DNA of 64,000 nucleotides, taken from sequence record MK250028.1. One strand, given 5' to 3'. The notes under the pieces are model-generated. The model searched no databases, was not told the DNA's origin, and worked only from the letters and a program-made list of their open reading frames with translations. Position 1 is the first letter of the stretch. The number at the start of each line of letters is the position of its first letter. A program made the position numbers and the translations under genes. Positions 3,007-42,838 of this stretch are shown in pieces.

Positions 3007-3257
3007 ATGGAAAGATTATATAAAGAATTAATTAAAGATATATCAATAAGTGTAAAGTAGGCAATAGAAGAATCAATAGGTACATTACAAACTGATAATG
3101 ATATAGATATAATATATATATACGTAATAATATTAATAATTTAGATTTAAGTGAGTTTAATTATGATATATTAAATTATCTGATACCTGATAAAGAAACA
3201 TTAATTAATACAGTATTATGTAAAATGTCGGTATCTAATGTTATAGATAAAAAATAA
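3007..3257 (+). pseudogene. small TAG-containing ORF frameshifted in a (TA)5 tract
   Basis: MERLYKELIKDISISVK(TAG)AIEES leader resembles other genes; removing one TA at 3113-3122 restores an open frame to TAA 3255-3257. Confidence 0.45.
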
Positions 3258-3325
3258 GTGTAAAAAATAACTTTTTAACATTTTTAGATATATAATAAAA
3301 AGATTTTTTCGATTAAATAAGATTT

Positions 3326-5230
3326 ATGGTAAGCAAGAAGAGTTTAGAAAGTAAGTATCAAAGTATGTCGGAATTAGATCATATCTTGAATAGATCAGGT
3401 ATGTATATAGGTTCCGTAAAGAATGAGAATAAGCAAATGTTTTTATATTCATCAGATGATGCAAAGATGAAATTAGTTGATGTTGAATATACACCAGCAT
3501 TGTTAAAGATGTTGGATGAGATTATATCAAATTCATGTGATGAGTATAGAAGAATAGATAATATGGGATTGACAGAAATGTCTGTTACCATTGATAAGCA
3601 TGGACGAGTAATCGTAAGAGATAATGGTGGTATTCCTGTTGTTAAACATAAGGAAGCAGGAATTTATATTCCTGAATTTATATTCTCACAACTAAGGACA
3701 AGTAGTAATTTTGATGATTCAGAAGATAGAGATGTAATAGGTACAAACGGTCTTGGTAGTAAAATTTGTAATATATTCTCTACGTTTTTTTCTATATATA
3801 CAGCAGATAAGAAACATTCATATTATAGATCATGGAAGAATAACATGCGAGAAATGAATGATGATTTACAAGTTAAGACCACGAAAGATCATTTTACAGA
3901 AAGTACATTTGACGTTGATTTTTCCAGATTTGAATGTGGTAATGAGTTCTCGGAAGATTTTATTAATATTATAGAAAAACGTTGTATTGATGCAGCTGCC
4001 GCTAATATAGGTTTAACTGTTCATTTTAAATATACAAATGGTAATGATGTTGTTAGAGAATCTGAATGGCATTTTCGTGCATTTGATGAGTATATTGATT
4101 TATTTTCTGATTATGTAGATACAGAACAAATGTTGAAGTTTTCTGATTCTATCATGCAAGTTTGGGTATTTCCTGATAATGGTATTAATGTTGGATTTGT
4201 GAATGGTGCTGAATGCTCAAGAGGAACACATATCAAAGCGGTTAGAAATGAAATTAATTCTGCTGTATCTGCATATCTTTTATCAAAAGAAAAAATTGAT
4301 ATTACACCAAAGAATGTAGATGGAAAATATTCAATGTTCTGTACATTCCATGTTAATAATCCGTCTTATGATTCACAGACAAAGGAATGTTTGACAACAG
4401 TAGTTGAAAGATTTTCAAATGATAATAAGTATACATTTAAGGTACCAGATTCATTTATTAAGTCTGTTTTGAAATCAGAGATTGTAGATATTGTAATAGA
4501 TTGGTATAAACAAAAATGTGAAGTAGAGGATCAAAAAACATTAAGAAAACTTAATAGACAAGCTAAAGCGAAAATTCGTAATAATGATAAATTCATTGAT
4601 GCAAATTCTAAAAGATCAGCTGATAGAGAGCTTTGGATATTCGAGGGTGATTCTGCACGCGCAGGATTTAGAGCAGCAAGAGACCCACAAACACAAGCAG
4701 CATATATGTTACGAGGAGTAATTCTTAATGTAATGGGACTTGCTCCAACAAAGATTATGGCAAATAAAGAGTTGTCTGATTTATTTAATATCATCGGTTT
4801 ACAATGGGGTGAACCTGTAGATGTGAAGAAATTGAATTTCAGTAAATTGGTTATAGCAACAGATGCTGATTTTGATGGTAGTAAAATCGCAGGTCTTCTT
4901 TTAACATTCTTTAATTTATGGCCAGAACTTTATGATGCAGGTTTAATTTGTAGATGTATTACACCTATTATTAAAGCTGTTAAAGGAAACGATGTTCAGA
5001 AATTTTATACGATGGATGAATTTAGGAAGAAAGAAAATTCATTGAAAGGATACAAGATAACATATTTAAAAGGTCTTGGTTCAAGTACGAATGAAGATTA
5101 TAAGGATATGATGAGAAATTCTGTTCTTCATTTCTTTAAGAAAGATGAACTTTCTGATATGACTATTAAAACATGGTTTGGAAAGGGTATTGCAAAAGAG
5201 AGAAAATCATTACTTAAGAATGAAGTTTAA
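3326..5230 (+). CDS. gp39/60: DNA topoisomerase II large (ATPase/TOPRIM) subunit, T4 gp39+gp60 fused type
   Basis: GHKL motifs (EIISNSCDE, DNGGIP, GTNGLGSK) and TOPRIM motifs (IFEGDSA, ATDADFDG, KGLGS). Confidence 0.95.
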   Translation: MVSKKSLESKYQSMSELDHILNRSGMYIGSVKNENKQMFLYSSDDAKMKLVDVEYTPALLKMLDEIISNSCDEYRRIDNMGLTEMSVTIDKHGRVIVRDNGGIPVVKHKEAGIYIPEFIFSQLRTSSNFDDSEDRDVIGTNGLGSKICNIFSTFFSIYTADKKHSYYRSWKNNMREMNDDLQVKTTKDHFTESTFDVDFSRFECGNEFSEDFINIIEKRCIDAAAANIGLTVHFKYTNGNDVVRESEWHFRAFDEYIDLFSDYVDTEQMLKFSDSIMQVWVFPDNGINVGFVNGAECSRGTHIKAVRNEINSAVSAYLLSKEKIDITPKNVDGKYSMFCTFHVNNPSYDSQTKECLTTVVERFSNDNKYTFKVPDSFIKSVLKSEIVDIVIDWYKQKCEVEDQKTLRKLNRQAKAKIRNNDKFIDANSKRSADRELWIFEGDSARAGFRAARDPQTQAAYMLRGVILNVMGLAPTKIMANKELSDLFNIIGLQWGEPVDVKKLNFSKLVIATDADFDGSKIAGLLLTFFNLWPELYDAGLICRCITPIIKAVKGNDVQKFYTMDEFRKKENSLKGYKITYLKGLGSSTNEDYKDMMRNSVLHFFKKDELSDMTIKTWFGKGIAKERKSLLKNEV

Positions 5231-5236
5231 TTATAT

Positions 5237-5278
5237 AATTCCATATGTTAATAAATTTTAAACATATGGAATTTTTTA
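5237..5278 (+). terminator. intrinsic terminator
   Basis: AATTCCATATG...CATATGGAATT hairpin followed by a T tract. Confidence 0.7.
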
Positions 5279-5293
5279 TTATATAATAATGTG

Positions 5294-5304
5294 TGTATCT
5301 TTGT
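5294..5304 (+). promoter_or_regulatory. TAnnTTTG promoter element
   Basis: TGTATCTTTGT about 33 nt upstream of 5337. Confidence 0.65.
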
Positions 5305-5336
5305 GATAATATATAAAATTAAATAAAAAATAAATT

Positions 5337-6281
5337 ATGAATAAAGAATTATTAAAAGAAAATATATCGGAATCCGTTAAAGATATATTAAAGAAATATA
5401 ATATTAGTGATATTAATGAATCAAATATATTAATATCTATAAATAATTGTATAGATAATATATTTGAAGGAATAGATATAGATCAAAGAAAACGACTTGT
5501 ATCATTTAATCCAAATCATCAGAATTATGTAGATACAAATGATCCATGGAATCCAAAACCTATATATAATGAAGTAGAAGGTTATAAGGTAATTTCAATA
5601 TTTAAACGTAAAGAAACTGAAGATAAACATGATGGAAATCCTGTTATATATGCACTTAAAGATATAAGAGGATGGAAATTTAAAAATCCATCATATGACA
5701 TATTTGCATTATTACGTAGATTTGTTTCAGTAACAAAAGAGCTTAAAGAAAATTTTGATGTTATTATTACCACACCATCTTCTAATAAATTAAATACCGA
5801 AGTTTTATATAGAATAAGGAGACTTATAAATCATGAAACATCATATGAGGATTTCTTTTATAAATATGGTGCTAATGATGTGTATGAAAATTTTCTTGAT
5901 ACTAATTATCTAGAAACACATTATAATGAAGATGAGCAGGAACATATACATGATTTATTATATGAAGCAATTTCTAATATGATGAAACCTAAAGAAAACA
6001 AAGGTAATGATGGTATTTTTTCTTATAAATTTATACCCCAACAAGAATTACGAAAATGTATTATAAAATCATTAGGCATTAATAAATTGTATAAAGATGA
6101 AATAACATATGGTAAGTATTTAAATGGTAAGAAAATACTGGTTATAGATGATACAGTCACATCGGGTAAAACCATATCTGATTCGGCGACAGCAATAAAA
6201 GATATGTATGATCCAGAATCTATAACATTTTTAACTTTATTTTCACCATTAGAACGAAATAAAAATAATTTAGAAAAATGA
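5337..6281 (+). CDS. phosphoribosyltransferase-fold protein, paralog 1
   Basis: PRPP-binding loop [18 protein letters not shown]; strongly similar to 9346..10272. Confidence 0.8.
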
Positions 6282-7770: not shown

Positions 7771-9231
7771 TTAAATTAATTTACCTTTTATAATATCTTC
7801 TTTGATAATATTAAACAATTTTTCTCCAAAAGCATTTAAATCTTTAACAACACATGTATAAACTGCATCATCTGAATCTCTATAAGCATATGCATTATCA
7901 GATATATATTTGTTCCTATATGTATCAGATGGTGAAAGTTTTGTTAAATTAATTAATACATCAGATTTATTCATATCTGAACTTCCAGACTGTAAATAAC
8001 ATTGTATAATAAATTTACGCACATCGGTATTATAATATAATGATTTAATAGCTCCACTCCAATCATTATAATTAACATTAATTAATTTATCAGGATTATT
8101 CTTTAATATTTGCTTAATATTTTCTTTTACCCATTCAAAATAATTAGAAGGATTACTATCCATATTATATTTAATTAAAGTTTCTTCACTATGTTCTGCA
8201 TTTCCTGATTCATCTCCCGTTTGTTTATATTTAATATAAGGTTTAACGATATATAAAAATACTCCTTTTGAAAATAATTTTATTATATTAGGCTTATTTT
8301 CAAAATATCTACATGCAGTGAAATTATATTTAAATAAATTATTTCCATCAAATTTTTCATTGAAATCACGTCGTCTTGCATCTGGTGCGAATGACGCAGC
8401 TTCATTATGAATAAAACAATCATATGAATTTTCCTTTATATCAATAGTTAAATATTGATAAAATGTATCCCAACCTCTTTTTCTAGTGCCTACATTTTCA
8501 TAAATTTCAAATAATACATCATTTGTACTTTTAAATAATTTATTAAAATTAACAATATCATTTTGAAGTAAACTGATAAGTTTATCAAAGTTCTATCCAG
8601 ATTTTCTAACTAAACTATTTACATATTTTTCAATATCTACTTCACATTTATCAAATGCTTTGTTATAACTACCAACAAAACTGGTTTTTAAATCATTGCT
8701 ATCATATAATGATACAGGTATATGTTGTATAAGTGAATCTAGTATTGTAATATATTTTTTATTAATAGGTGAACGTTTAGCACGTGGTTTTGAAACATTA
8801 GGAGTTGAAATTACAGGTTCAGTTACACGTGTTTTTCTAGAAACCGGTTGTTTTTGTACAGGTTCAGATGAAATACCCATATTAATATTATATAGCTATT
8901 GAATTTCTTCTATAGTTCCACCCAAATCTAATATTCTGTGTCCAAATAATTTGAATACTTTAATTTTATCTATATCTCTTTCACTTTTTGGACATGGTTT
9001 TTTCATAATAATTAAAGCTGCAACATATCTGTTAAGTAAATCATCCTTAGTAAGTTTCTTCATAGGTTTTACCAACTCACATTCAGTAGCTTTATTTCTT
9101 GAACAAACTGACGCAACACTTAACCATAATTTCCTATCTAATGTTCTATGGTCAATACGTTTTGCCATTTCATTTAATGATTTCTTTAAACTATATGATA
9201 TACCATTCATTAATTCTTTATATAATGACAT
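7771..9231 (-). CDS. TAG-recoded hypothetical protein (486 aa, 2 in-frame TAG)
   Basis: Track fragments 8896..9231, 8593..8880 and 7771..8163 share one frame, separated only by TAG at 8896 and 8593; N-terminal about 115 aa paralogous to 39811..41436. Confidence 0.85.
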
Positions 9232-9307
9232 TGTGTTTAATATTAAAACTTTTTATATTTATTTGTTTTAATAGTAAAGACTTTATGTTTCCTAATTAAT
9301 AAAATAA

Positions 9308-9345: not shown

Positions 9346-10272
9346 ATGACTAAAGATGAATTGAAAAATATTGTTTCCTCTGTTATGAGTGAAACTTTAA
9401 AAAAATATAATATTAATGAAATTGAAACAAATAATATGTTATTTTCATTAAATGAATATATGGATAATCATATGTTTGAAGGAATAGATGTAGATGATGA
9501 AAATCATATTGTTTCATTTAATCCTAATCATCAAGAATATGTAGATACAAATGATCATTGGAATCCAAAACCTATATATAATGAAATAAATGGTTATAAG
9601 GTAATATCTATATTCAAACGAAAGGATACAGAAAATAATTTAGACGGTAATCCTTTAATTTATGCATTAAAAGGTCATAAATGGAAGTTTAAGAATCCAT
9701 CATATGATATATTCGCGTTATTACGTAGATTCGTTGCAGTAACAAAAGAACTTAAAGAAACATATGATGTAATTATAACAACACCATCATCTAATAAATT
9801 AAATACTGAAGTATTATATAAAGTTAGAAGGTTGATAAAACATGAAACTTCATATGAAGATTTCTTTATGAAGAATGATGCTATTTATGTATATGAAGAA
9901 TTATTGGATAATAATTGGATTGAAAAACATTATAATGAAAAAGATGCAAAACGAATAGATACTGAAATATATAGGGCTATTTGTCGCATACAAAAATCAA
10001 AAGATAACGGAGGTAATGATGGTGTTTTTTCATATAAGTTTATACGAAATAAAGATGTAAGAAATGCAATAATTCAATCCATGAGTATAAATGATATGTA
10101 TAAAGATGAAATAACATATGGTAAGTATTTAAATGGAAAGAAAATATTGGTTATAGATGATACAGTTACATCTGGTAAGACTATATCTGATTCTGCTGAA
10201 GCAATTATTGAAACATATGCACCAGAATCTATAACATTCCTAACTTTATTTTCACCTTTAATGTCTGAATAA
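9346..10272 (+). CDS. phosphoribosyltransferase-fold protein, paralog 2
   Basis: [18 protein letters not shown]; long identical blocks with 5337..6281. Confidence 0.8.
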   Translation: MTKDELKNIVSSVMSETLKKYNINEIETNNMLFSLNEYMDNHMFEGIDVDDENHIVSFNPNHQEYVDTNDHWNPKPIYNEINGYKVISIFKRKDTENNLDGNPLIYALKGHKWKFKNPSYDIFALLRRFVAVTKELKETYDVIITTPSSNKLNTEVLYKVRRLIKHETSYEDFFMKNDAIYVYEELLDNNWIEKHYNEKDAKRIDTEIYRAICRIQKSKDNGGNDGVFSYKFIRNKDVRNAIIQSMSINDMYKDEITYGKYLNGKKILVIDDTVTSGKTISDSAEAIIETYAPESITFLTLFSPLMSE

Positions 10273-12649: not shown

Positions 12650-13822
12650 ATGGAAGAAAAACAATAGATAAATGATGAATATATAATTTCTTTATTTTTC
12701 ACATCAACTACAATGCCACATAGAATAAGATCATCATCCAATAAAATAATTGAAAATAATAATGATATAAAAAAATATTTGTTACATAGATTTAACGATT
12801 CTAATAATTGTAGTTATAAAGAAATACTTCATAGAATAAAATATAATATAGAAGAAAAACCTAAATGCCCAATTTGTGGAAAATATGTAAAATATTATGG
12901 TCTTTCAAATATGTTATATGGGAAAACATGTTCACGTAAATGTCAATACGAATATATGAAAACCGATGAATTTCAAAATAAAATAGATCATTCATATATG
13001 AAAGATCCTAATATTATAAAAAGAATATAGGATAAACGAAAATTAAAAATGAATGAAATTAGAGAAAAGACAAAATAGACTCTTTTTGTCAGATATGGTG
13101 ATTCACATTATAATAATAGAAATAAATGTAAACAAACATTATTAGAAAAATATGGTGTTGATAATATAATGTAGTTAGATTTTGTAAAAGATAAAATAAA
13201 GAAAACAAATTTGATTCGTTATGGTGTTGAATGGTCAGCACAAAATAAGCAAATAAATCAAAAAACAATAGATACACAAATAAAAAAATATGGTGGTGTA
13301 TTTAATCCAGAAAAAGTAAGAAAAACAAATATTGAAAAATATGGAGTGGAAAAACCATTTATGTCTGAAGAAATTCAAAATAAAGTTGAAAATAAACGAG
13401 ATATTATTCAAAAGAAAACTAATATAACAAAACGTTTAAGAGGTACATTTAATACATCAAAACCTGAAAATGAATCTAAAACTTTATTAGAAAATAAATT
13501 TGGCATTAATAATGTATTAACTCAATATAAAACCGAATTATATCCATTTTATTGTGACTTTTATGTCAAATCATTAAATTTATATATAGAATGTAATTAT
13601 CATTGGACACATGGTGGTCATGTATTTAATGAAAATGATTTAAATGATATAGAAAAACTTAATAAATGGAAAAATAAAAATACAAAATTTTATAATACAG
13701 CAATAGATGTTTGGACTGTAAGAGATCCATTAAAAATAAAAACCGCATATGATAATAATTTAAATTATAAAACTTTTTATTCTTTAGATGAATTAAAACA
13801 ATATTTAGAAAATACATTATAA
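12650..13822 (+). CDS. TAG-recoded free-standing homing-type endonuclease (Zn module + KYG repeats + PD-(D/E)XK/Vsr-like domain; 390 aa, 4 TAG)
   Basis: One frame from ATG 12650 to TAA 13822 with TAG at 12665, 13028, 13076, 13172; CPICGK...CSRKC module, T-L-EKYG repeats, C-terminal FYCDFY...IECNYHWTH. Confidence 0.8.
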
Positions 13823-13847
13823 ATATAAGAAACTATAATTTTAATAA

Positions 13848-15272
13848 ATGAAAGTAACAACAAAGAAAGTTAAAGGTTTAGACGCACATATTATTGAAGA
13901 TAGTAATAAGAAAGTAGTAAGAACTATAACAGATTTTTTAAATACAGATTATAAGGATTATACAAAATATGTAATTGCTACAAGAGCATTACCGAGTCTT
14001 CTTGATGGATTTAAAGTAGGAGCTAGAAAGATTATGCATGCTGCTTTCCATGGAGGTATGAAAAATGGGTCTGAGATCAAGAATTTGAATTTGGTTGGCG
14101 ATGTTTATAATTTAACATTATATCAACATGGTGACGCGAGTTTGGTAAATACAATGTTTACAATGTCTGCAGAGTTCCGTGATAACCTGCATCCTATTAC
14201 CATAACTGGTCAACATGGTTCGTTACGTGATGAAAAAGCTGTTTCAGCTCCACGTTATCTTTATTGTAAGTTATCTCCATACGCAAAACTTTATAAAGTA
14301 GATGAAGATCTTCTTGAATATGTTTTTGATGAAGGTGCTTATCTTGAACCAGTAAATTATTGGCCTATTATTCCTACTGTTATTACTGCACGTGCAGAAG
14401 GTATGGCACCAGGTTATAAATTCAGTTCATTTTCTTATAACCCTATTGATATTATCGACGCATGTACAGAAGTATTGAATACTGGAGATATTAAAGAAAC
14501 TATTATTAGACCTTATGTTAGAGGTATTGAAGAAGATAGATTTACATTTGATAAAGATGCTGGTAAATGGTTGAATTCAGGTGTATATAAGGTAGATATT
14601 AAGAATGATATATTTCAGGTAACAGACCTTCCATATGATATGGGATTTGATAAGTTTGAGAAGAAACTTAATGATATGGTAGAAAAAGGGTATCTTAAGG
14701 ATTGGAAGAATTATTCTCAGGATGATAAGTTGAATTATTGGTTGATATTTCCTAAGAAACAACTTGAACGTGAGATGAAACCAGAACGTAAAGATAAACT
14801 TTTTAAGAAAATTGGATTATATACATATGTACCAGATGATTTACTTTATGTTCTTGATGAACATAAGAAAGTAAAGCATTTTATCAATAAGGAAGAACTT
14901 ATTAAATATTTTGTTAATATTCGTCTTAACAAATATAATGATAGGAAAGATAGATTAGTTTCTGTCATGGAAAAACGTTATGAGGAAAACAATAATATTT
15001 GTAAATTTATAGAATTAGTTAACAGTGGTGAATTAGTTATCTCTAATAGAAAGAGAAAAGATGTAAAGGATGATTTGAAGAAATATAATTTACCTGAAAC
15101 TGTATTACAAATTCAGATTTCTAAGTTAACTGATGAAGAGAAGAAAGAATTGATTAAGAAGAATAAGGAGATTGAAAAAGAACTTAAGTATATTAAGAAA
15201 ACAACTATTAAGGACATGTATCTTAATGATTTAAGTGAATTGAGAAAATCTCTTGAAAATGATTTTAAATAA
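13848..15272 (+). CDS. gp52: DNA topoisomerase II breakage-reunion subunit (T4 gp52/GyrA/ParC-like)
   Basis: RALPSLLDGFKVGARK, YQHGDASL, SAPRY active-site Tyr. Confidence 0.95.
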   Translation: MKVTTKKVKGLDAHIIEDSNKKVVRTITDFLNTDYKDYTKYVIATRALPSLLDGFKVGARKIMHAAFHGGMKNGSEIKNLNLVGDVYNLTLYQHGDASLVNTMFTMSAEFRDNLHPITITGQHGSLRDEKAVSAPRYLYCKLSPYAKLYKVDEDLLEYVFDEGAYLEPVNYWPIIPTVITARAEGMAPGYKFSSFSYNPIDIIDACTEVLNTGDIKETIIRPYVRGIEEDRFTFDKDAGKWLNSGVYKVDIKNDIFQVTDLPYDMGFDKFEKKLNDMVEKGYLKDWKNYSQDDKLNYWLIFPKKQLEREMKPERKDKLFKKIGLYTYVPDDLLYVLDEHKKVKHFINKEELIKYFVNIRLNKYNDRKDRLVSVMEKRYEENNNICKFIELVNSGELVISNRKRKDVKDDLKKYNLPETVLQIQISKLTDEEKKELIKKNKEIEKELKYIKKTTIKDMYLNDLSELRKSLENDFK

Positions 15273-16036
15273 TGATAGATAATCTTTTTGATGATGATAT
15301 TTTAATTGGTGATGATTCATCTTCTGTATTTAATGATACAGGAGTTGAATCATTAACTAATTTAATAGGTAATAATATTACGGAACTTAAGAAAAATTCA
15401 TATCTTAATATGAGAGGAACTAATTATGATGTATGGAGAGCATATCTTAATGAGACAAAAGGAAGATACCATGATGGATATTGGAATAGTTTTTCATATA
15501 ATGTAAATGATCCTTATAATGTTACATTAAAAATTAAATCATTAAATGGATTTAAATTTCATAATAGACAAACAAATTATAGATTAGGTATTTTAGACAT
15601 TAATTTATTTAGATGCATTCCATATATACAGAAGATAGAATTAGAACCAATATATGATGATAGAACAATATTTAATGATATTATCTTTATGAATATGTTA
15701 AATAACAATAAACATAAAGATAATAATATGATAGATAAATCATTTGTTGATAATTTACAATGGTTAGAAGAAATACGGAATGAATATCAAATAAAGAATA
15801 ATATATCACAGTATATAGTATTTCAAGGATGTGTATTTGATGTTGATGCAATTCAATATTTAAATGATAATATTCCAGATAATTTTGATATTATCATAAC
15901 TTCAGACTGTGATATATTTATGAATGATGAATATATAAATGTTTTTAGATTACCATTGATGTTTAATACTAATTTTGATTGGAATACATGTAATAAAATA
16001 TCATTATATAGAGAACCTATATTTAAAATTCATTAA
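15272..16036 (+). CDS. hypothetical protein with LFDDD acidic N-terminal motif (254 aa)
   Basis: ORF track; starts MIDNLFDDDILIGDD. Confidence 0.75.
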   Translation: MIDNLFDDDILIGDDSSSVFNDTGVESLTNLIGNNITELKKNSYLNMRGTNYDVWRAYLNETKGRYHDGYWNSFSYNVNDPYNVTLKIKSLNGFKFHNRQTNYRLGILDINLFRCIPYIQKIELEPIYDDRTIFNDIIFMNMLNNNKHKDNNMIDKSFVDNLQWLEEIRNEYQIKNNISQYIVFQGCVFDVDAIQYLNDNIPDNFDIIITSDCDIFMNDEYINVFRLPLMFNTNFDWNTCNKISLYREPIFKIH

Positions 16037-16721: not shown

Positions 16722-17846
16722 TTAATCGAAAATATCATGATATTGTTCTAAAGCATAATCTGATAGTTTAACAGTTATACATGAATTAGGAGTTGCATTT
16801 CTTAATATTATAGGATCTTTTGCCGTATTTTCATTATTTGCAAATCTTGTATCTATCATAGCATAAAAATCAAATGTTATACCCTTTGATGTTAATTCAT
16901 ATTCAGCAGAATCATCTTCTTTTTCTAATTCATTTAATGGATATATATCTTTCTATAATAACCATAATAAGAATACAGGTATTTTATATTGCTTTGATAC
17001 CTTTGATGCATTAATAGATTTATTCCAGTTAAAATACATAACTCCATAAGGCTCATTATTTTTATCTAAATCAAAATATTTAATAAATTGCGTTATTCCT
17101 GTACCTACTGTTTTTTTATACCTATTTTTTAAAAATGATAATCGTTTTTCTCTATCTTTAGTATTCTTAATGATATTTTTCTAATCATCAGAATCCTTCT
17201 CATCATATATAACTTTACCTGTTAATTTAATGGTTGCAATATCTTTAAATGAATATCTACCTTCATTTGTATATCGATGTTCCATAAAAATTATGCCTTC
17301 ATCTTCAGATAATAATATTTTATGACAATACATATCTTTTTTAAATATATCTTGAATAATTGACGGCATTTTAGGAAATGTATGACATACCCAAATTGTA
17401 TACTTTTCAATATCAGCATTATATGCATTAAACATTGGTTGCCCTGGTGAAGGAAAATTATAATTTGGACGAAGTAATTTCTGAGCTTTCATATAATCTA
17501 TGCCATGTGTAAATGCATATGGACAATTTGATGCTGTATATTCAGTAAATCCTTTTGCTTTAAGTTGGTTCATTACTTTTTCTCCATATGCATCCATACC
17601 ATATGATATTTTACTTTCATGTGTTAATATTTGATTTCCATCCTTATCTCTATCATATTTCCATGCACGAGGCTTATCAACACCTAATAAATCTATGATA
17701 ACTGGTTTTAAATCATTCGATGCTATTTTTGATGATATTTCCTAATCTATTAAGCCTGTATTTTCTTCATCTCCTAAAATATCATCATCAAATAGATCGG
17801 ACGATGATTCATATAATTTTAATAACTTATATATATTCTTTTTCAT
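16722..17846 (-). CDS. TAG-recoded hypothetical protein (374 aa, 3 TAG)
   Basis: Manually translated ATG 17846 to TAA 16722; homologous to the C-terminal part of 39811..41436 (KPRxWKY, LSxDEG, TGxVxxYDEKD). Confidence 0.85.
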
Positions 17847-17888
17847 ATATTAATATTCTTATATTATGTATAATATTTATTAAATAAA

Positions 17889-17944: not shown

Positions 17945-20900
17945 TTAACTTGCTAATATAAGAAGTATTGGTGTAAGTGCTGCAGACTTCCATATAGCAT
18001 AGAATGTTTTATTCGATGTAATTGCAGCTGAATTACCTGATGTGCTTCCGGAAGTTGCAGAATTTGATTCTGCCCAACCTTGGAATGTATATCCAGATTT
18101 AGTAGGTGTATAAGTACTGAATGATACTGTACTACCGGATTCAACAGATTGAGTAGGATTAGTGGTTGAACTATTATATGTACCACCATTAAGATTCCAT
18201 GTAACTGTAAATACTTGTTTCCATGCGGCATAATAAGGTGTAGCAGTTTTAATTGTAACAGTAGAAGTTGAACCTGATGTTGCAGAACTTGTTTCTGCCC
18301 ATCCTTTAAAGTTATATCCACTTCTCGTTGGAGTATAACTGCCTAAATTGATTGATTTTACATATATAACATATGGACTGGTTGTATATGTTGTATCACT
18401 TACTACTAATGAACCACCATTTGGATAAAGGCTAACTTTAGCTGATACATATGTAAACTATGTATATACAGATGTCGCAGTTGTTATTGCTGTTTCTGTT
18501 TTTGAAATTAAAGTACCACCGTATGGTTTTGTATACCATGCTGCAGTATATCGTATGAACGTAGCATCTTCAATAATATCAGCAAATGATGCTGGCGCTG
18601 ATAATTCATTATATTTTGTACCTTTTTTAACAGAACTTTTTTTATCTTCCGCTGTACCATCTGCCCATATTACCACAGCACCATTTGTGTGATTTCTCCA
18701 TGTAATTGTAACAGAATCTTTAGACCATGTTGCATAATATGTTTTTGCTTCTGAAACTTTCTATGAACCTGTTAATGTTCCAGATGTGTCAGTATCTCTT
18801 ATATTCCATCCTGCAAATGTATAATCAGTTTTAACAGGTTTATAATCATCATATTTAAATGATGTTACGTAAATTTCCCATTTTGTTGATTTATCTGAAC
18901 TAGATACTTGTCCGCCATTACAATCTAATATAACTTTATAATTTGTACTGAAATGTAAATAGAATGTAGTATCACCTGTTACTGTAGTGTCATTATCTTT
19001 AATAACTATATTACCAGTTTCAGTAGTATACCAACTTCCATTTGACTTATATTGCTCTGTTTTGTCTGAATTATATAAAGTAACCTTAACACCTGTAGGA
19101 ATAGATATATCTTTGTATTTTGTACCATAGTTTTCTGTTGTCGTTGTTGATGATTCATATGTTTGGTCATCTTTAGAATAGAAATTATATATAGGGTAAC
19201 TCTTCCATTCTATTGTATAACTTCTTGTTGAATTTGAATATATAGCATATAATGTTATTGAACCTGATGGATTTGTCAAACTATAAGGGAATGTTATAGT
19301 ATTTATAGAACTTGATGTTTCACCCCAGCCTTTAAACGTATATGTTTCAGAAGTTGTATTAGTTTTTGTAGGATTTGAACCATATGCATTTATTGTTTTC
19401 CCATATGTTCCTTTAGATGTTTGAGATAATTTTCCGTCATCCCATGTACCACCATTACCATTCCATGTAATTGTTATATTTGTTACAGCCCAAGTTGCAT
19501 AAAAATCCCAGACTATTCCTTGTTTATTATTTACACTAAGTGGAAATGTGTTTGAATAACATAATAAACCTGCATTAGTACACCATGTTTTAAATGTATA
19601 ATTTGTTTTTGTTGGATAGTTATTATATCCTAAATCAGAAGGTTGACATTTAAATGTTTTTCCATGATAATCATATATAGTAGATGTTGTTGTACTAGTT
19701 TTATCAGTTTTTGTAAATGTACCTCCTTTTGGGTCCCAATATACTTTAATATATGCGTCAGGTTGCGTCCATCGAGCATATAATGTAATGTCACTTTGTA
19801 ATGTAGATGAACTAGATACAGCGTTACCGTCTGTTTTAGTGGAATAATTATTAGCAAATGTATATTTATAATTACTTCCATCTATCCATGTTGGTGTTTC
19901 ATCCGGAGTTAAATCTGTATATTTAGTACCTTCACTAAATTTTTTTGTTACAGTTGTATCTGTTATTGCGGAACCATTTCTATACCATTTTGCATATGAA
20001 TTATTGATGCTAAATGTTACTGTATATGTTGTTGTATTACCTGTTTGTGATAATGTCGCCGTTCCAGTAAGGCCATTATAACTACCAGTAAATGTATATT
20101 TTCTACTGTCTTTACTTGTACCTAAATTTGGGATAGTGACACTTGAATCTGATACAGTAATACTATTATCAGTAGTACTCGAACCAATTTTATATGAGCC
20201 GGTAAAAGTAGTGACGTTAGTAACAGTTGTATCCGTATCTTTTGTACTTGTAGCTCCAGATGTCCATGATACATTATATGTTTTCGTCAGTACTGCTTTT
20301 AATGTTGCCGAACCACCTTTATAATCATAAGTAGTAGGGTCTACAGATACCTTTAGTTTAGATGATGATTCTATAGATGCCTGTGTTCCAGAATTACCCT
20401 ATCGTGTAAGTGTTGCAGTAGATGTAGCTGTTAATATTGTACCTGAATTATTTTTAACATCATATTGTTTCCCATCATATGTATGTTTAAGGCTTTTAAC
20501 TGTTACAGAAATTGTAGCGTAACTATTATTAGCTGATGCTGTAGTTGTACCTAAAGATTCAGCTGTTTTAGATGTTGGTGTAAATGTATACATTGAATTA
20601 GTTAAGTCACTTAATGACCAATTTACAGTTTCCTATGAAGTCTTACCTTCCATAGAAGTATAATGCCATATATATGTACCCTTCAATGTACAATCAGTTG
20701 CTGTTATAGTCCCTCCTGATGCTGGAAAATGATAACCAGATGAACCTTTTGCATAACTAAATGTTGTAATATTCAAATCAGTATAATAGAAAGCTTTAGA
20801 TGTATCAGGACCATCTAATTTCTGAGTTACTGTAGCTTCATTAGATTTTATATTATCATATGTTGTTTGAAATTTTATAGTTCTTGCAGATGATGTTGCA

Positions 20901-21946
20901 GGTATTGTATATGATCCTCCTCTTATATTAGTTGTTCCAGATATACCAGATACCGTATAATTACTATTAGCACTTAATGTTTCTGGACCTTGATTTGCAT
21001 CAGTTCCACCACCGGATGTTGAACCAGAAGAATATTGATATACAGTTTTATGTAATGTATATTTTCTACTTAAACTAAATGTTACAGTTCCACCGGAGCT
21101 ATATACTACAGTTGGACTTACAGAAAGAATAACGCTTTCTGTTGTTTTAGTTTCCCCTGTTTTAACTGATTTTACATTAGCGTCTTGTTTAACAGTAAAT
21201 TCAGGGTGTGTTAGTGTAACACTATCTATTGTTGTTGATTTTTGGATAGTTCCGCCTGCGGCAATTGTTTTAACATTTGTTACACCTGATTCTGTTGTAC
21301 CTTTTGTTGTTGCCGAAACGGTTGTAAACGTAACAGTTTCAGAAGCATCTTCTGTTTCACCGGAATTGAATGTTTTTCTGTATGTTAATTTACCAGAACT
21401 TACAGTTCCACCAGATGCAGGAATATTATCAACTGTGATAACGGCATTATCTAATTTAGTTACATACTTATCACGTTTTGTTTGAGTAATTGTTATATTT
21501 GCTTGTTCATGTATATCGCCACGTAACCCAACTGCATATATTATAATAGTTCTATCTGATGAAGCATTATCTCTTTGTTCAAATGTAACACTAAAAGGAT
21601 TATTATATGTATTTTGACCATACTAAGTTGGTGTATTATTTATTTTACAACCTGATGTCTCACCACTTTTAAAAGAGGCATTAGGATAGTTATATACTCT
21701 TTCTTCTGTTCTTGTAGAAAAGCCTTCGCGTATTAAATATGTCTCTTTACGATATAAATTAAATGTTTGTGTTGTACCACCTTCCCATGATATATTAGGT
21801 ACAGTATTTGGGTCAGAACCGTATTCTGTTTTAATTAAAGTTTCTGTTTTCTTTACATAGAATCTTTTACTGCTTTTCTAACCTTCCCATGATACGTGAC
21901 TATTTTTCTAAACATCTATTGCCTAATTACTATTTTTTATAATCAT
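17945..21946 (-). CDS. TAG-recoded tail fibre/adhesin-like protein with PASGG repeats and InlB-B (Listeria-Bacteroides, Flg_new) repeats (1333 aa, 8 TAG)
   Basis: Single frame ATG 21946 to TAA 17945 interrupted only by TAG; Thr/Ser-rich; repeated PT(K/R)xGYxFxGW...T(L/F)YAxW units; IPASGGT/FPASGGT. Confidence 0.8.
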
Positions 21947-21964: not shown

Positions 21965-23035
21965 TTAAAACTAATCCTTATATGCATTATATGTAGCAAT
22001 TACATCTTTAAGATGAATATCAGGGAATAATTGTAATTTTTTCAATACCTATATATAATCCTATCTATTATAATATATATTTCTAGATATTCTATAAGGA
22101 TTCTTTCCAGTTATAACAGATATTAGAATATCGTCATTAAATGAAAGTTGCATATCTTTATAATCTCTATTCTTCGCACATATAAATAAAGCAGCAAGTC
22201 TCGCAACCATTTTATCAGGATTTGTTATCTTATCAAAACCACTATACTTACCGGTCATTAAGCATTTATCCATACGATCAATGTCTTTCTATGTAACTTT
22301 ATATACTTTACCTGTACATGTTAATTCATCAGCAAGTCTCTTTGTGCTAAATATAGTTTCAACTTGTCCTTTTAATGCAATACTAATTTCATTAATTTTC
22401 TTATTTACATTTGAAAACTATTCTTGATTAATCTTATCAATAACTTTATTAATAGGCGCATTTTTATCTTTATCACCTGGTCGGCGTAAAGGCGTTGATG
22501 GATATTTAATTAATTTCCATATAACTTTATAATCTGTTCCAAAATTATTAAATACAACAGCCCATGATTTTAATACTTTTTCTTTATTTCTATATGTAAT
22601 AGTATAAGGTTCCTATTTAATTGTAAATTCAATTTTTTTACTCTATTCCGAACCTATATAACATATAAAATAATATACTTCCTGAAATTTTCCTGTTTCT
22701 GGATCAATAACTGAATTACGGTTAATTATAACCATTTTATTTTTATCAGATAATTTATCTTTATCCATCTTTGATGCCCAAAAGAAACCATTATCCGTAC
22801 ATCTATCTATTTCATTCATAACAGCTACTACTGTATTGATTACCTAATTATTTAAATCGTATTTATTAATAAAATATTCATTTACCTCTTCTTGATTATC
22901 ACACTATCCTAACGATGTTATCTTTGTAGCATTTGAAATTAATTCAGATGTTTTATTTGATGCATCATCATTATATAAATCATCAAATTCATCATCAAAT
23001 AAACTTTCCAATAAAAGTTTGATATTCTTGTTCAT
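21965..23035 (-). CDS. TAG-recoded hypothetical protein (356 aa, 9 TAG)
   Basis: Manually translated; leader MNKNIKLLLESLFDDEFDD; includes track fragment 22061..22273. Confidence 0.8.
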
Positions 23036-30911: not shown

Positions 30912-31005
30912 ATTATAATAGTGTAGCGGGAATGCACGCTCGATGATAAATCGAGAAGGGATTAACGGTATGAGGTTATTAAGGGTTCGACTCCCTCTTA
31001 TAAAC
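30912..31005 (+). tRNA. atypical tRNA-like element, anticodon ATA (Tyr-like, long variable arm)
   Basis: D-stem GTGT/GCAC, anticodon stem CTCGA/TCGAG with loop TGATAAA, T-arm AAGGG-TTCGACT-CCCTC, 6/7-bp acceptor, no CCA; G at position 33 is non-canonical. Confidence 0.5.
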
Positions 31006-35266: not shown

Positions 35267-35339
35267 TATTAATAGGATGATATAAACTAATATATCATCC
35301 TATTATTTTAATAAATATTTAAATGTTAATTTTTATTAA

Positions 35340-36404
35340 ATGAATAAATTAATTAAGAAATTAATGGAGGGATTATTTGATGATTTTGATGATGAAATTT
35401 TATCAAATTCAGATAATTCAAATAATGTATCTCAATAGATAATTGAAACGGAAGATAAACCTAAAATTAAAGAATGGTTGTTAGATAATATTATTTGTAA
35501 ATATGGAACATCATTTAAATGTGATGAAGGTAATGATATTGAATATACATTTGAATCAGATGGATTACATTGTAATTTAAAATTTAATGTACAAGTTGCA
35601 AAATTTATGAATTCTATTCCAGATTATGTTAAAATTAATAAAATAACTTGTAATACTGTAGAATTTGCAGACTTTATTAATTTACCTAAAGAAATAGATG
35701 GGACATTAAATATAAAAGGATGTAAGGAAAAAGATTTAAATGTACAATTACCAGAGAAATTAGGTGTATTATCGCTTATTAATTGTAAAATACGTTCATT
35801 GAAAGGATTAAGTAATACATGTAAATCAATAGAGCATCTTTATATAGAAAATTGTAATATGTTTACTTCATTTAATGGAATTCCAGATAATGTTGGATTT
35901 ATATAGTTAATTAAATGTAAGAAAATAGTAGATTTAGAAGGAATTCCAGATTCAGTAGAGAGAATTGTATTAGTTTCATTACCTTCATTTGAAAGTTTAA
36001 AAGGATGTCCAAATAAATTAAGTAATGGATTGTATATATAGGAGTGTCCATATTTAACCACATTAGCATATTGTCCATCATTAATAATGGACCAATGTGA
36101 AATACATGATTGTATGTTATATCAGTTAGATATGAAAAATACAAGAATTTGTGGTACATTTAAATTAAGTAATAATAATTTATCAGATTTAGAAAATGGA
36201 CCAAAACAGATAGACGGATCATATATAGTTTCGGAACTGTATTTAGCAAAATTTAAAGCTAATGAAACTATTATGACAAATGCGTATAATAATGCGGAAT
36301 TTATATATCAAGTTAGGAAAAAATATTTTAAAGGAAATAAAAATGACATGCCATAGATGAACAATGGTGTAAAAATTGTATGTCAATATTTTGAAGACCT
36401 TTAA
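35340..36404 (+). CDS. TAG-recoded leucine-rich-repeat protein (354 aa, 4 TAG)
   Basis: Joins track fragments 35478..35906 and 36087..36356; repeats SLKGLS, SFNGIP, DLEGIP, SLKGCP, DLENGP; LFDD leader. Confidence 0.8.
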
Positions 36405-37273: not shown

Positions 37274-37392
37274 AATTTATTAAAATTAAATGTTAATGTT
37301 AAATCTAAATTTTTTAATTACTTAATGTATATGATAAGTATAAGAAAAAGTCTATTATAAATAGAATAAAATATAAAATATTAAAGTAAATA

Positions 37393-38550
37393 ATGATTAA
37401 TAACAAATAGAATTTAATGGATGATATATTAGATGCAATATCAAAAGGATTAAAAGAAAGTTTAAATATAGAAGAGCAAATCCATCCATATAATGGTGTT
37501 TTAACGGATATAAGAGATTACGAATCTGTATTTCATTCTCCAAATTTTGAATTATATAAATTAAATGAAAAATATCATGAAGTATGTATATCTCAATAGA
37601 TATTAAATAATATTATAAAAATAATTAAAGATAATAAAAATAATTTAGGAAAAGACATATATACAAATTATTGCTTTAAAATATATAAAGTTAATAATCA
37701 TAAAACATATAAAATATATAAATCAATTAATATTAATAAAGATCACCCTATATATGTAAATTTATATTCTAATAAAAGTAATGTATATGGTAAAACAGAA
37801 AATAGAATTATATCTAATGATATAAATTTAGATAATGATCATATAAGAATATATATAAATGTTTATTATATTAATATGGAAAAATTTATATATTCTGTAT
37901 TAAAACATGAATTAACACATGTTGTTGAAATGTATTCTGCTAAAAAGTTTAATAATATTAATAATTTAAAAAATACTATAGGAATTGATAAGGATAATGA
38001 TATAATGTTAGATATAAATCCATTAGCAAAAAATATGTTAAATAGGATGGTTTACTTATTCTCTAATACTGAACATAATGCACACATAAATGGTTTAGCT
38101 GAATTTATCAATAAATTATCACCAACAGAAATAAAAAAATATACAAAATATATACAACATGAAGATGATGATGAAAATATTAAAGTAATTAATAATATAA
38201 ATAATCCTATATATAATTTTATGAGAAATTATGATGATTTAGATATATTAACAAATTATCAGGAATTTGAAGATTATATGTTTGATTTAAAAAGTTATTT
38301 AGAAAACAATGATTTATTACCAATTTTTTATTTAGGTTATTTATTATAGAAACATCATTTAATATATAACAAAACTTAGATAAATTGGGATTTTATTAAA
38401 AATTATATGGATAAAAAATATAAAAATTATAGTAAATATCATAATATTGCTGTATAGATAGTAAGTTTCTATGATTATAAAATAAAACAATATAGAGAAG
38501 ACATATATAAAATAATATATAAGAAATTTAAAGAAAAGAAAATTATTTAA
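37393..38550 (+). CDS. TAG-recoded HExxH zinc metallopeptidase-like protein (385 aa, 5 TAG)
   Basis: Open frame with TAG only; VLKHELTHVVE plus downstream FSNTEHNA. Confidence 0.75.
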
Positions 38551-39711: not shown

Positions 39712-39719
39712 TAGATATA

Positions 39720-39760: not shown

Positions 39761-39810
39761 TTTTATTTATATATGTAAAATAAATAATATAATAATTTAT
39801 TATATTAAAA

Positions 39811-41436
39811 ATGAATCAAAAATTATATAGAAGTTTAATTGAAAGTATAGGTATTGCTATTAAGAAATCAATAAATGAAATGGCAAGACTTTCTGTATAG
39901 AGAACCATAGATAAGAAACTTTGGTTAAGCGTAGCATCTACATGTTCTAGAAATAAATCAACAGAAGCAGAGAATATTAAACCAGGTAAAGGAGATAAAG
40001 ATAATCTTCTCAATAGATATGTTGCAGCTCTTATTATAATGAGAAAACCATGTCCATAGACTGAAGATGATATTGATGATATTAAAACATTTAAATTGGT
40101 AGGACATAAGTATTTAGAATTAGGTGGTACTATTGAAGAAATTCAAGCTCTATATAATAAAAATACAGGAAAACCTTCTACTAATAATACATCTACAAAA
40201 AAACAAGTTGAAACAAAAGATAATACGGAAAACAATAAAGGTTTTGATAATGCAGTAGAATAGAAAACATCTGGAGGCGGATTATTCGACGATGATGATA
40301 TATTTGGAGACGATGAAGTTAATAGAGCATTAACATCTGACTTACAAAAAAAGATTTTAGATCTACCAAAAGAAACATCATTAGAAAATGTATTAATGTA
40401 GAGTATAGGTATTACAAAACCACGTGGATGGAAATATATCAAGCATACAAATGAAGAATATGATAAATTTGTATTTAATATGAGTGGTACAAGCATAACA
40501 CCAGAATACACATGGAATTATCCTAAATATTTGAAAGATTTCATAAACCTTATAAACAGTAAAGGATGGAAATTATATAAGGTTGAAGCACCGTCTTTAT
40601 TCGGTTATTATAGATTTGAAAATATGACACCTGCATAGGTAAAACAATAGATACAATACGCATGTGAATCTCGTTATAGTATTAGTAAAGATTTAACAGA
40701 AACTATAAATAAAAGATTTAAGGAATACGAAGATTTTATAAATAAACGCAGACATGATATATAGGCAATTGATAATAATTTTGTGAAACAAATGTTTGAA
40801 TAGGATGAAAATGTATATCGAGTTTTTTTATCACCTGATGAAGGACTTATGTTGACATGTACAAGACCTAAACCGGTAAATGTATCATATGGTAATTTAA
40901 ATATTTCAAAAAATTATTATACTAATTATACAGAATGGATATGGACTGTAACATTTACAGGAAATGTAAATGATTATGATGAAAAAGATAAAACAGATAT
41001 AAAAAAATTAAAGGAAGATAATAAGAAATATAATAAGCGCAAAAAAATATTTAGAACATTATTAGATAAACGATGTGGCTTGCCAGGATATAAGTGGACA
41101 ATGTTTAATGATGGTAATGGTTATCCTATAATGGTTAAGATATGTAGTAAAGGACAATGTAAGATTACATATGATAATTTTACTAAAAAATATTATAATC
41201 CTTATACAAGTAAATCAAACTATTACTATATACCTACAGATGATAAGACATTTCCTAATTCATTTAAGGAGGCTGTTTAGAATAAAGATCATTGGGGTGT
41301 ATCATTGGTGAAATTGATATGTTGTAATAATGACGGGAAATATGGTCATTCCCTATATGGTGGAAGTGATGATGAAGCATATATGATTATAATGCCTACA
41401 TATTATGGTAAAGCCATGATTGATTCTCTATTATAA
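39811..41436 (+). CDS. TAG-recoded two-module hypothetical protein (541 aa, 9 TAG)
   Basis: Manual translation; N-module paralogous to 7771..9231, C-module paralogous to 16722..17846. Confidence 0.85.
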
Positions 41437-41485
41437 TGAATACAAATAAATATATATGAATTAAAATATAATTTTTAATAATAAA

Positions 41486-41902
41486 ATGAAAGTTAGTGAA
41501 AAGAAGAAATTATATGAGTCTATCATGATGAATGTATCAAAGATAGTTAAGAAAAAGTTAAATGAATATGGCGATGGTATCGAGCAGGATGTTGATCCAG
41601 ATGATGATATTACTGTATATGTTCCTTTGATTGGTTGTGAATGCACTGTTATTCCTTGTTATGATGAGGAAACAGGTGGAACATTCTACGAGGTTCATGA
41701 TGATAATGATGAATATGTATGTGAGATTCATGATGATGTGGATACATCAGATGAAGACGCATTGGTAGATGCTATTGAAGACAATTACCAATGGGAATCA
41801 AAATCAGGTGATTATGAAAATGTTGATCCATTAGGTCCTGATGATTCTGATGTAGATGATGAGTTCGACACTTATGAAGAAGACGAAGATTATGATGTTT
41901 AA
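41486..41902 (+). CDS. acidic protein with LYESIM...LNE leader (138 aa)
   Basis: ORF track; Asp/Glu-rich. Confidence 0.8.
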   Translation: MKVSEKKKLYESIMMNVSKIVKKKLNEYGDGIEQDVDPDDDITVYVPLIGCECTVIPCYDEETGGTFYEVHDDNDEYVCEIHDDVDTSDEDALVDAIEDNYQWESKSGDYENVDPLGPDDSDVDDEFDTYEEDEDYDV

Positions 41903-41905
41903 TAA

Positions 41906-42259
41906 ATGAAAAGAATTATTAATATAAGACCATTATCAGAAAATACAATAAGGAAATCTTTTGGTGCTTCATTAGAAGATAAACTGAGAGAATTAAGAGA
42001 TGAAGTAAATGATAGTAGATTACTTGAAGATACTTTAGTATTTCAGATAGGAAGAGAAGTATATACAGATAATGGTACAAGATATAAATTATTGGGAGGT
42101 CATCTATCATACCAGGAAATGGGATTAACATAGATGGACCAACAGTTATATAGTAATATTGTTTCCGGTAAAACTGATGTTGATACAGTGCTATATAACT
42201 GGAAGAATAAAAAGGTTAAAAAATTGAACTTTTCTTCAAGAAAAATATAGAAAAAGTAA
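41906..42259 (+). CDS. TAG-recoded hypothetical protein (117 aa, 2 TAG)
   Basis: Track fragment 41906..42133 extends through TAG to TAA 42259. Confidence 0.7.
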
Positions 42260-42261
42260 AA

Positions 42262-42306
42262 TAAAATGGTGAATATTTAACATAAAATTAAATATTCACC
42301 ATTTTT
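42262..42306. terminator. bidirectional terminator
   Basis: AAAATGGTGAATATTTAA...TTAAATATTCACCATTTT. Confidence 0.75.
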
Positions 42307-42308
42307 TA

Positions 42309-42716
42309 TTAATATGTAGATAATTCTTGTGTAAATGTACTTAATGCATCATCTATAGATGAAAACTCTCCAAATGATACTTCTGTATCAGGATCAGAAA
42401 ATACTTCAAATTCGAAATCTATTTTATCAACAGGACCAACGGCTAATGTATATGTTCCATTATTATTCTATTGAATAGTTAAATGACTATTTTCTCCTCC
42501 ACAAAAATCATCGAATTTCTATTGTAAATTATAATTATTTGCAAATATTCTCAATAATGATTCTGGTTCTCTATGTGTACCTTTTGAACCTCTCATAATT
42601 CTAACTTCAGATGAATTAAAATATGATAAAATTATTTTCTTTAAATTATTTAAAGACATAGGTATATTAGAGTTTTCATTAAGCGCTCTTTTTACTGTTT
42701 TTGAAACAGATTTCAT
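42309..42716 (-). CDS. TAG-recoded hypothetical protein (135 aa, 2 TAG); upstream leader broken by TAA
   Basis: Open from ATG 42716 to TAA 42309 with TAG read-through; an upstream in-frame ATG at 42755 is followed by TAA at codon 5. Confidence 0.7.
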
Positions 42717-42838
42717 TATAGATTCATAAAGTGATTTCTTTTAATTTTTATTCATAGTAATTATTTATATTTTAATTTTCATTTATATATTTATACTGAA
42801 AATATAATTATAAAAATCCTATGTCTTTATTTACATAA

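Follow-up and report, generated by a model that had tools for sequence, protein, structure and literature searches.

The first 64 kb of the genome of Prevotella phage Lak-B9 (MK250028.1; 550,053 bp; source, baboon faeces), which is analyzed here as a whole (64,000 nucleotides) and is termed the window, contains genes that open with one of two types of N-terminal leader and continue into proteins that are mostly unrelated to one another. These leaders are probably (with a likelihood of roughly 60%) cleavable propeptides that would target the proteins to the capsid in a head assembly system of the T4 type. TAG is read as Gln (code 15) in all translations. When 643 open reading frames (ORFs), obtained from the whole genome by a simple ORF call with a coding density of 91%, are examined by pattern and profile scans, about 27-30 of them carry a leader.

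The type-1 leader is represented by (K/R)(K/R)-x-LYESIMKSVSKTVKKKLNE and opens nine clear genes and about five divergent ones, and the type-2 leader is represented by L-x-E-SLFDD followed by acidic residues and opens ten to twelve genes. An earlier note on this DNA described both leaders as ending in L/I-x-E. This description is incorrect for type 2, in which the conserved SLFDD acidic block follows L-x-E rather than preceding it. A single junction is common to both types, because the genes at genome positions 74012 and 77328 read ...LNE↓SLFDD (the arrow marks the junction) and because hybrids exist, such as that at genome position 277170, in which the type-1 helix runs straight into SLFDD. 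The type-1 leader is 21-33 residues long in the protein clusters, with a mode of 27, and the type-2 leader is 10-24 residues long if it is cut at L-x-E. In paralog family A, the leader consists of 27, 21, 16 or 11 residues and always ends with L/I-N-E↓(M/A).

The preference of the motif for N-termini, which the earlier note had proposed, is confirmed by a profile scan of the genome. The type-1 profile gives 14 matches, 12 of which are N-terminal, and the type-2 profile gives 11 matches, all of which are N-terminal (together 23 of 25), when a match is regarded as N-terminal if it starts within the first 20 residues, for which 7.8% of the positions qualify. Neither the reversed proteome nor any of five shuffled proteomes, used as decoys, contains a leader profile match. 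The tripeptide [LI]NE is found 58 times within the first 40 residues, as compared to 23.9 times expected (2.4-fold, p=3e-9), and the control tripeptides [LI]ND, [LI]NQ and [LI]NK are not enriched in this region. LYES and LFDD are enriched by 14-fold and 28-fold, respectively. The leaders are 54% identical in amino acid sequence and 63% identical in nucleotide sequence, and different codons are used at 35% of the identical residues, including AGT versus TCN for Ser. This result indicates that the leader is conserved as protein, not as DNA. The consensus sequence, KKxLYESIMKDVSKTVKKHLNE, contains a charged or polar residue every 2-3 positions, and a hydrophobic core such as that of Sec, Tat or lipoprotein signal peptides is not seen when it is read directly, the uncharged hydrophobic run being at most 2-3 residues long and Cys being absent. 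Pfam and PHROGs flag the leader itself in none of the approximately 45 leader proteins scanned. In the AlphaFold2 model of the 138-residue leader protein encoded by 41486-41902 (11 orthologs), residues 3-25 form a helix that is followed by disorder, but this model is of low confidence (mean pLDDT of 56, and approximately 40 over the leader) and is only weakly informative.

The distribution of the leader beyond Lak-B9 was analyzed by searching 1.84 billion representative proteins with a 27-position profile constructed from five leaders of the window. This search gives 367 protein clusters at E<=0.001, and in the best 150 of these 367 clusters the match is located almost always at the very N-terminus. 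A Met residue is located a few residues upstream of most of the seemingly internal matches, suggesting that the gene calls are over-extended. When 137 clusters are aligned on the terminal Glu, the information content per position ranges from 1.8 to 4.4 bits between P22 and P1, is 0.6 bits at P1' and stays below 0.25 bits from P6' on. L/I at P3 and E at P1 are present in all 137 clusters, and N at P2 is present in 131; these three positions are partly set by the selection pattern, but the drop after P1 and the other leader positions are not. The residue at P1' is in most cases N, S, D, M or A. The clusters occur on contigs of up to 525-782 kb, and one of them is located on a 732,687-bp scaffold with a GC content of 38%, in which the heptamer ATAAATA is present 31 nt before the ATG. 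Because the tag is spread over 367 clusters and contigs of up to 782 kb, it is regarded as a feature of the whole group of Lak-type megaphages. The type-2 leaders are likewise among the best-conserved stretches of their proteins when compared with Lak-A1 and Lak-C1 (identity of 0.6-0.84, versus 0.08-0.56 in the following blocks), and for gene 21965-23035 compared with Lak-A1 the identity is 0.76 in the first 25 alignment columns and 0.08-0.56 in the next eight blocks. A word-based homolog search with the 138-residue protein gives only Lak orthologs and no leader-only matches, but this search is confined to proteins that are 0.55-1.75 times as long as the query, and significance in it is out of reach for a short motif.

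The leaders of the window and related elements are as follows.

3007..3150, plus strand: relic ORF of 47 codons with the type-1 leader MERLYKELIKDISISVKQAIEE and no body; the downstream Toprim/GyrB topoisomerase gene 3326-5230 has its own start.
9169..9231, minus strand: type-1 leader MSLYKELMNGISYSLKKSLNE of gene 7771-9231 (486 residues).
15272..15313, plus strand: weak type-2-like start MIDNLFDDDILIGD (10.6 bits) of gene 15272-16036; this gene directly adjoins 13848-15272, which encodes the topoisomerase A subunit.
17766..17846, minus strand: type-2 leader MKKNIYKLLKLYESSSDLFDDDILGDE of gene 16722-17846.
22973..23035, minus strand: type-2 leader MNKNIKLLLESLFDDEFDDLY of gene 21965-23035.
35340..35402, plus strand: type-2 leader MNKLIKKLMEGLFDDFDDEIL of gene 35340-36404, which encodes an LRR-like body (LRR_4, 25.4 bits, just below the cut-off).
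37393..38550, plus strand: gene of HExxH family B with a weak leader; KLNE at 37558-37569 and HELTH at 37906-37920.
39811..39879, plus strand: type-1 leader MNQKLYRSLIESIGIAIKKSINE of gene 39811-41436 (541 residues, nine TAG codons).
40282..40317, plus strand: internal LFDDDDIFGDDE block in gene 39811-41436, before the region homologous to the body of 16722-17846.
41486..41566, plus strand: type-1 leader MKVSEKKKLYESIMMNVSKIVKKKLNE of gene 41486-41902 (138 residues), which encodes a very acidic body; its orthologs keep the leader, which is followed by a variable acidic linker.
42675..42755, minus strand: type-1 leader consisting of MNKN, a TAA stop codon and KKSLYESIMKSVSKTVKRALNE; the present ORF is 42309-42716.

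All leader peptides quoted in the earlier note are found at these loci when TAG is read as Gln, but not all of its assignments can be retained. At 3007 the peptide is present, but the cargo protein is not, the relic ORF being separate from the downstream gene for the B-type subunit of topoisomerase II. At 42755 the peptide is also present, but the leader is not intact, the stop codon following codon 4, the gene starting at 42716 with a shortened leader and the leader being lost in Lak-B7. The membership of 37393 is weak, with its leader missed by the profile, and the cleavage point proposed for it is replaced by the conserved site of its family, KLNE at residue 58. Gene 15272-16036 remains a member of type 2, but is the weakest one. 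The proteins behind the leaders were stated to be unrelated, and at least 20 families are indeed mutually unrelated according to BLASTP. However, 7771-9231 and 39811-41436 encode paralogs over approximately 90 residues past the leader, where both bodies open with a domain (domain A) common also to two genes outside the window, and 16722-17846 is related to the C-terminal part of 39811-41436. In the Lak-A1 ortholog of 7771-9231, ILNE↓MAK is kept and the remaining leader is diverged. Genes 5337-6281 and 9346-10272 were considered as additional members and rejected; their proteins start with a vaguely similar helix, but they have no late motif, no TAG codon and no profile match. Further relic leaders are located at genome 236718-236861 on the minus strand and at the C-terminal end of the ORF at genome 203155-204507. 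A full type-1 leader, MNNKKELYKSLIESIAVSVKKSLNE, is also located in frame at residue 279 of a 487-residue ORF with 19 TAG codons (genome 271878-273341, minus strand). A TAG codon precedes the Met of this internal leader by five codons. The ORF is a fusion or polyprotein, or else it comprises two genes with nothing but a recoded TAG between them.

Most of the leader proteins are ORFans, and no family is assigned to most of the approximately 45 leader proteins by Pfam and PHROGs. Of those with a recognizable body, a complete sigma-70 factor is encoded behind a type-1 leader at genome 198344-199357 on the minus strand (Sigma70_r2, 44 bits; phrog_351, 6e-43). The leader of this factor is kept in Lak-A, Lak-B and Lak-C, and the leader with its linker is considered to be a Lak-specific addition, because the sigma homologs of other phages align only from residue ~52. 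One leader protein contains a phage lysozyme domain. The lysozyme-domain and sigma-factor bodies would fit proteins that are delivered by the virion. The HExxH family consists of five paralogs, encoded by 37393-38550 on the plus strand of the window and by genome 497796-498815 (minus), 318179-319171 (plus), 133268-134260 (plus) and 505682-506653 (minus). HExxH and a downstream conserved Glu residue are kept in four of the five, including 37393, as in zinc-metallopeptidase-like proteins. This family has a conserved (L/I/V)-N-E-E-Y-H site near the N-terminus, and one of its copies adjoins the prohead protease gene. Two type-2 proteins are LRR or BspA-like, and several leader proteins are small and very acidic.

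The leader genes share an upstream element. ATAAATA is present within 60 nt before the ATG in 24 of 29 leader genes, but only in 93 of 451 other genes (21%; p=1e-11). In many TAG-containing genes, this heptamer is located 29-40 nt before the ATG. Genome-wide, it peaks 30-39 nt before the ATG and precedes 86 of 196 TAG-containing genes, as compared to 30 of 283 others (p=1e-16). TAG codons themselves are present in 19 of 27 leader genes and 177 of 455 others (p=0.002). The sites in the window are as follows.

39780-39786, plus strand: ATAAATA, 31 nt upstream of the ATG at 39811.
13819-13825, 35311-35317, 37357-37363 and 41446-41452, plus strand: ATAAATA at equivalent upstream sites.
9256-9262, 17874-17880, 23059-23065 and 42788-42794, minus strand: ATAAATA at equivalent upstream sites.
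54661-54667, minus strand: ATAAATA, 61 nt upstream of the capsid gene.

Every leader gene of the window has ATAAATA before it, which for 15272 is located before the upstream gene 13848. Outside the window, it also precedes the portal and protease genes. The late promoters of T4 read TATAAATA. A gp55-like late sigma factor is encoded at genome 402938-403324 on the plus strand (tblastn, E=0.007; phrog_234, E=4e-11). ATAAATA and this sigma factor look like a late promoter system of the T4 style and would define a candidate set of late genes. Because ATAAATA precedes both the leader genes and the head genes, and a gp55-like sigma factor is encoded, the leader proteins are probably made together with the head proteins.

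The head genes of T4 type include that for the major capsid protein, which is located in the window.

52603..54606, minus strand: T4 gp23-family major capsid protein (PF07068), with K-L-N-E at residues 61-64 (54415-54426) as the candidate propeptide end.

The capsid gene contains a single TAG at codon 11 (54574-54576, minus strand), and with the standard code translation would begin at Met52 (54453). All homologs (662-667 residues) have the long form. A gp20-family portal protein is encoded at 415 kb (Portal_T4, 197 bits), and a gp21-family prohead protease of 581 residues is encoded at genome 496003-497748 on the minus strand (Peptidase_S77, PF03420, 55-56 bits with a cut-off of 27; phrog_207, 2e-30). 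His84, Ser140 and Asp163 of this protease align with the catalytic residues of T4 gp21, the His and Ser residues being located at nearly identical positions. The catalytic triad of the T4-type prohead protease has been described (PMC5694885). KLNE64 of the capsid protein is invariant in all Lak homologs examined, and LNE21, (V/I)NE180↓S and YLNE192↓S, which flank the protease domain, are also invariant with neighboring residues that vary, but among the matches listed the homologs of both proteins are only those with identities of at least 89%, which offer little diversity for judging the conservation of a site. In T4, processing occurs C-terminal to Glu, the gp23 propeptide consists of 65 residues and the tags consist of 10-20 residues (PMC5694885). 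The substrate sequences read from the T4 record are MKTYQEFIAE↓A for IPII and IPIII, ...FLTE65↓AEIGG for gp23, MAKINELLRE↓S for gp24, MLKEQLIAE↓A for gp22, MNEPQLLIE↓T for gp21 and MELITELFDE↓D for Alt. All of them fit (L/I)-x-E, in agreement with the rule for T4 cleavage on which the earlier note relied. Thus, the components that a T4-like system would require and that can be sought in a sequence appear to be present, with the end of the capsid propeptide as a candidate. Residues ~230-400 of the protease protein form a long low-complexity region rich in Asp, Glu and Ser, which is followed by a C-terminal domain. This region could be scaffold-like and is a candidate receptor for the basic leaders. 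The complex predicted for residues 22-200 of the protease and the leader, with an alignment of 50 leaders, has a score of 0.02 and weighs neither way.

The docking, cleavage, packaging and ejection steps that we infer would proceed in the following manner. Late in infection, the gp55-like sigma factor would transcribe the ATAAATA genes, namely those for the capsid protein, the portal protein, the prohead protease and approximately 30 leader proteins. The leader, as a basic amphipathic helix of 21-33 residues, would dock its protein onto a highly conserved component of the prohead core, for which the long acidic tail of the 581-residue protease protein and the 64-residue capsid propeptide are candidates, and docking would cause the protein to be enclosed when the shell closes. 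The Peptidase_S77 protease, with His84, Ser140 and Asp163, would then cut after (L/I)-N-E in the leaders, in the capsid propeptide (KLNE64) and in its own flanks (LNE21, (V/I)NE180 and LNE192). The matured cargo, which would include the sigma-70 factor, the lysozyme-domain, HExxH and LRR proteins, small acidic proteins and many ORFans, would stay in the head and presumably be ejected with the DNA.

Several observations weigh against this reading. Lak phages are uncultivated, and the reading rests on sequence. Some leader genes have no TAG codon. The profiles of the Lak leaders do not detect the T4 tags in ~70 kb of T4 that covers IPI-III, Alt and genes 20-24. A sequence search with the capsid protein against the PDB gives no match, and its KLNE site is not alignable to T4 residue by residue, the Pfam model starting downstream of this region. 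The protease ranks first of the 643 proteins in [LIV]NE density (6 observed versus 1.0 expected), but this excess fails correction for 643 tests. The 19-residue core of the leader is longer and far more conserved than is required for a protease site or a T4 tag of 10-20 residues, so that the leader may do something additional or different; conservation of the helix far beyond the needs of a cut site implies that its receptor is specific and just as conserved. The type-2 leaders remain strongly conserved past L-x-E, in SLFDD and the acidic residues, and this pattern is not explained by simple removal of a leader. Finally, the mature bodies show no shortage of [LI]NE (9 observed versus 10.6 expected), although this comparison is underpowered.

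The extreme conservation of the whole helix and not just of its last three residues, the conservation beyond L-x-E in type 2 and the lack of avoidance of [LI]NE in the bodies would all be accounted for by a docking helix that is not cleaved, but anchors late proteins to a virion or assembly structure, such as the inner body, scaffold, tail lumen or baseplate, with LNE as part of the binding surface. Location of the genes in the late-promoter class is also consistent with such a helix. However, the conservation of type 1 ends exactly at a Glu residue that fits the rule of the T4-family protease, LNE also flanks the protease domain and is located at the expected end of the capsid propeptide, and the LNE end is constant while the length of the leader varies from 11 to 33 residues. 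An uncleaved helix is therefore unlikely. The nature of some of the carriers, the sigma-70 factor and the lysozyme-domain and HExxH proteins, whose activities would profit from timed activation, raises another explanation, in which the leader is a pro-sequence or localization tag unrelated to the capsid. Such a leader might keep enzymes inactive, or confined to one place in the cell, before processing, much as in the pro-sigma factors of sporulating Bacillus. This explanation is difficult to reconcile with the presence of the same tag on ORFan bodies that number in the hundreds and include tiny acidic proteins, with the lack of a Sec, Tat or lipoprotein-type hydrophobic core in the consensus, and with the prohead protease, whose site of action in T4 is the interior of the prohead, as the only matching protease found, and it is rated as quite improbable. 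The shared start may also be a functionless by-product of gene birth, generated when a cassette of promoter and first codons is copied or recombined before new genes. The leader and ATAAATA do travel together, relic and shortened copies exist and one leader gene is located at the edge of a strain-variable island. Nevertheless, this origin is highly improbable, because the use of different codons at 35% of identical residues, including AGT versus TCN for Ser, indicates selection on the protein, because a nucleotide identity of 63% is too low to drive homologous recombination, and because hardly any variation is seen in the peptide among 137 clusters and in the relative with a GC content of 38%. 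Thus, a cleavable capsid-targeting propeptide is the preferred explanation for the leaders.

The GC content is ~26%. With the standard code, many regions are left without long ORFs, and these gaps are closed when TAG is read as Gln, for example at 7771-9231, 16722-17846, 17945-21946 and 21965-23035 on the minus strand and at 35340-36404, 37393-38550 and 39811-41436. Pfam matches also span in-frame TAG codons, as seen for Portal_T4 (197 bits, nine TAG codons) and Peptidase_S77 (two TAG codons). Code 15 has been assigned to Lak in the genome paper, in which TAG is used mainly in structural-protein regions (PMC6784885), and TAG recoding is a mark of structural and late genes (PMC6784885; bioRxiv 10.1101/2021.08.26.457843). 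TAG is read as Gln on the basis of these closed gaps, these matches and this assignment. Code 4 (TGA=Trp) was rejected, because it leaves the gaps unclosed. ARAGORN calls no CUA suppressor tRNA, though TAG is read as Gln. Odd tRNA calls are a 93-nt 'tRNA-Tyr (ata)' at 30913-31005 on the plus strand, in a gene-poor stretch of the window, and two others in genome segments (L006:30993-31065 and L003:37424-37498), one with the anticodon UUA and one with a four-base anticodon. Intron-containing tRNAs are mentioned in the Lak paper (PMC6784885).

Other features of the window are recorded here. The type II topoisomerase is split into a B-type gene (GyrB/Toprim) at 3326-5230 and an A-type gene (DNA_topoisoIV, 220 bits) at 13848-15272, both on the plus strand and ~8.6 kb apart, and ATAAATA is present 29 nt upstream of the latter. 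A 1333-residue protein with eight TAG codons and C-terminal Listeria-Bacteroides repeat domains is encoded at 17945-21946 on the minus strand, where type-2 leader genes of the same orientation stand on either side. The region 23000-47000 is 100% identical across Lak-B9, Lak-B1, Lak-B3 and Lak-B6. The region 42792-45989 is a strain-variable island; a deletion removes it from Lak-B5, and Lak-B7 has another segment, of 5.3 kb, in its place. Its ORFs resemble methyltransferase- and helicase-type genes, as judged by sequence motifs only, and its left edge is located 36 nt upstream of the leader gene at 42755 on the minus strand.

The genomes of Lak phages are among the largest known for phages, and the function of most of the genes in them is unassigned. 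These phages are frequent in the guts of animals and humans and have so far not been grown in culture. It is possible, though somewhat doubtful, that Lak-type megaphages (contigs to ~780 kb) load dozens of diverse and fast-evolving effectors per genome into the head with one portable 27-residue tag, including an injected sigma-70 factor that would redirect the host RNA polymerase at once. If so, the tag would provide a sequence-only readout, from metagenomes, of the set of proteins injected by uncultivated giant phages, labeling ~5% of the genes as virion-delivered, together with hundreds of clusters in relatives, and yielding a testable list of candidate effectors for host takeover and anti-defence. 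The tag could also be used to load foreign proteins into large capsids, as the T4 tag has been (PMC5694885). The principle of the T4 tag would then be scaled up many-fold in the largest phages. ATAAATA and the gp55-like sigma factor provide a first working definition of the late gene set of Lak.

Encapsulin cargo-loading peptides are also short conserved peptides on diverse cargo for a shell of HK97 fold, but are usually C-terminal and uncleaved and function without a maturation protease. The principle proposed for Lak is already known from the capsid-targeting sequence of T4 (PMC3012670, PMC5694885), and related propeptides are known from phiKZ-like phages; the Lak version appears to be undescribed in the Lak literature searched, in which such leaders, the prohead protease and the late promoter are not mentioned. 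The capsid-targeting sequences of T4 (IPI-III and Alt), which are removed by gp21, are similar to the Lak leaders in that they are short N-terminal peptides on otherwise unrelated, fast-evolving proteins and end with (L/I)-x-E (PMC3012670, PMC5694885). T4 and Lak are also alike in having portal, protease and capsid proteins of the gp20, gp21 and gp23 families, in late genes preceded by a promoter resembling TATAAATA together with a gp55-like sigma factor, and in relic duplicated gene starts (alt.-1 and alt.-2 in T4). However, the Lak leaders are longer (21-33 residues with a mode of 27, versus 10-20 residues), much more conserved and fixed as Asn at P2, and have no detectable similarity to MKTYQEFIAE or MELITELFDE, the resemblance of LFDE of Alt to LFDD being anecdotal. 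They are also far more numerous, with ~30 genes per genome and at least 367 clusters, include a second sub-class with an acidic SLFDD block and probably have a sigma-70 factor among their candidate cargo. In the phiKZ-like giant phages, a gp21-related protease (gp175 of phiKZ and gp245 of SPN3US) cuts after Glu; its substrates are the capsid protein, the protease itself and several proteins of the internal or ejection kind (PMC5694885). Eight of the ~50 head proteins of SPN3US are processed, and its paralogs gp53 and gp54 have an identical N-terminus of 15 residues (PMC5694885). The cleavage motif of these phages is A/S/G-x-E, and their propeptides are mostly longer than 100 residues, without a single portable tag (PMC5694885). 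In contrast, P3 of the Lak leaders is L/I and never A/S/G, and one short conserved tag is present on many unrelated bodies.

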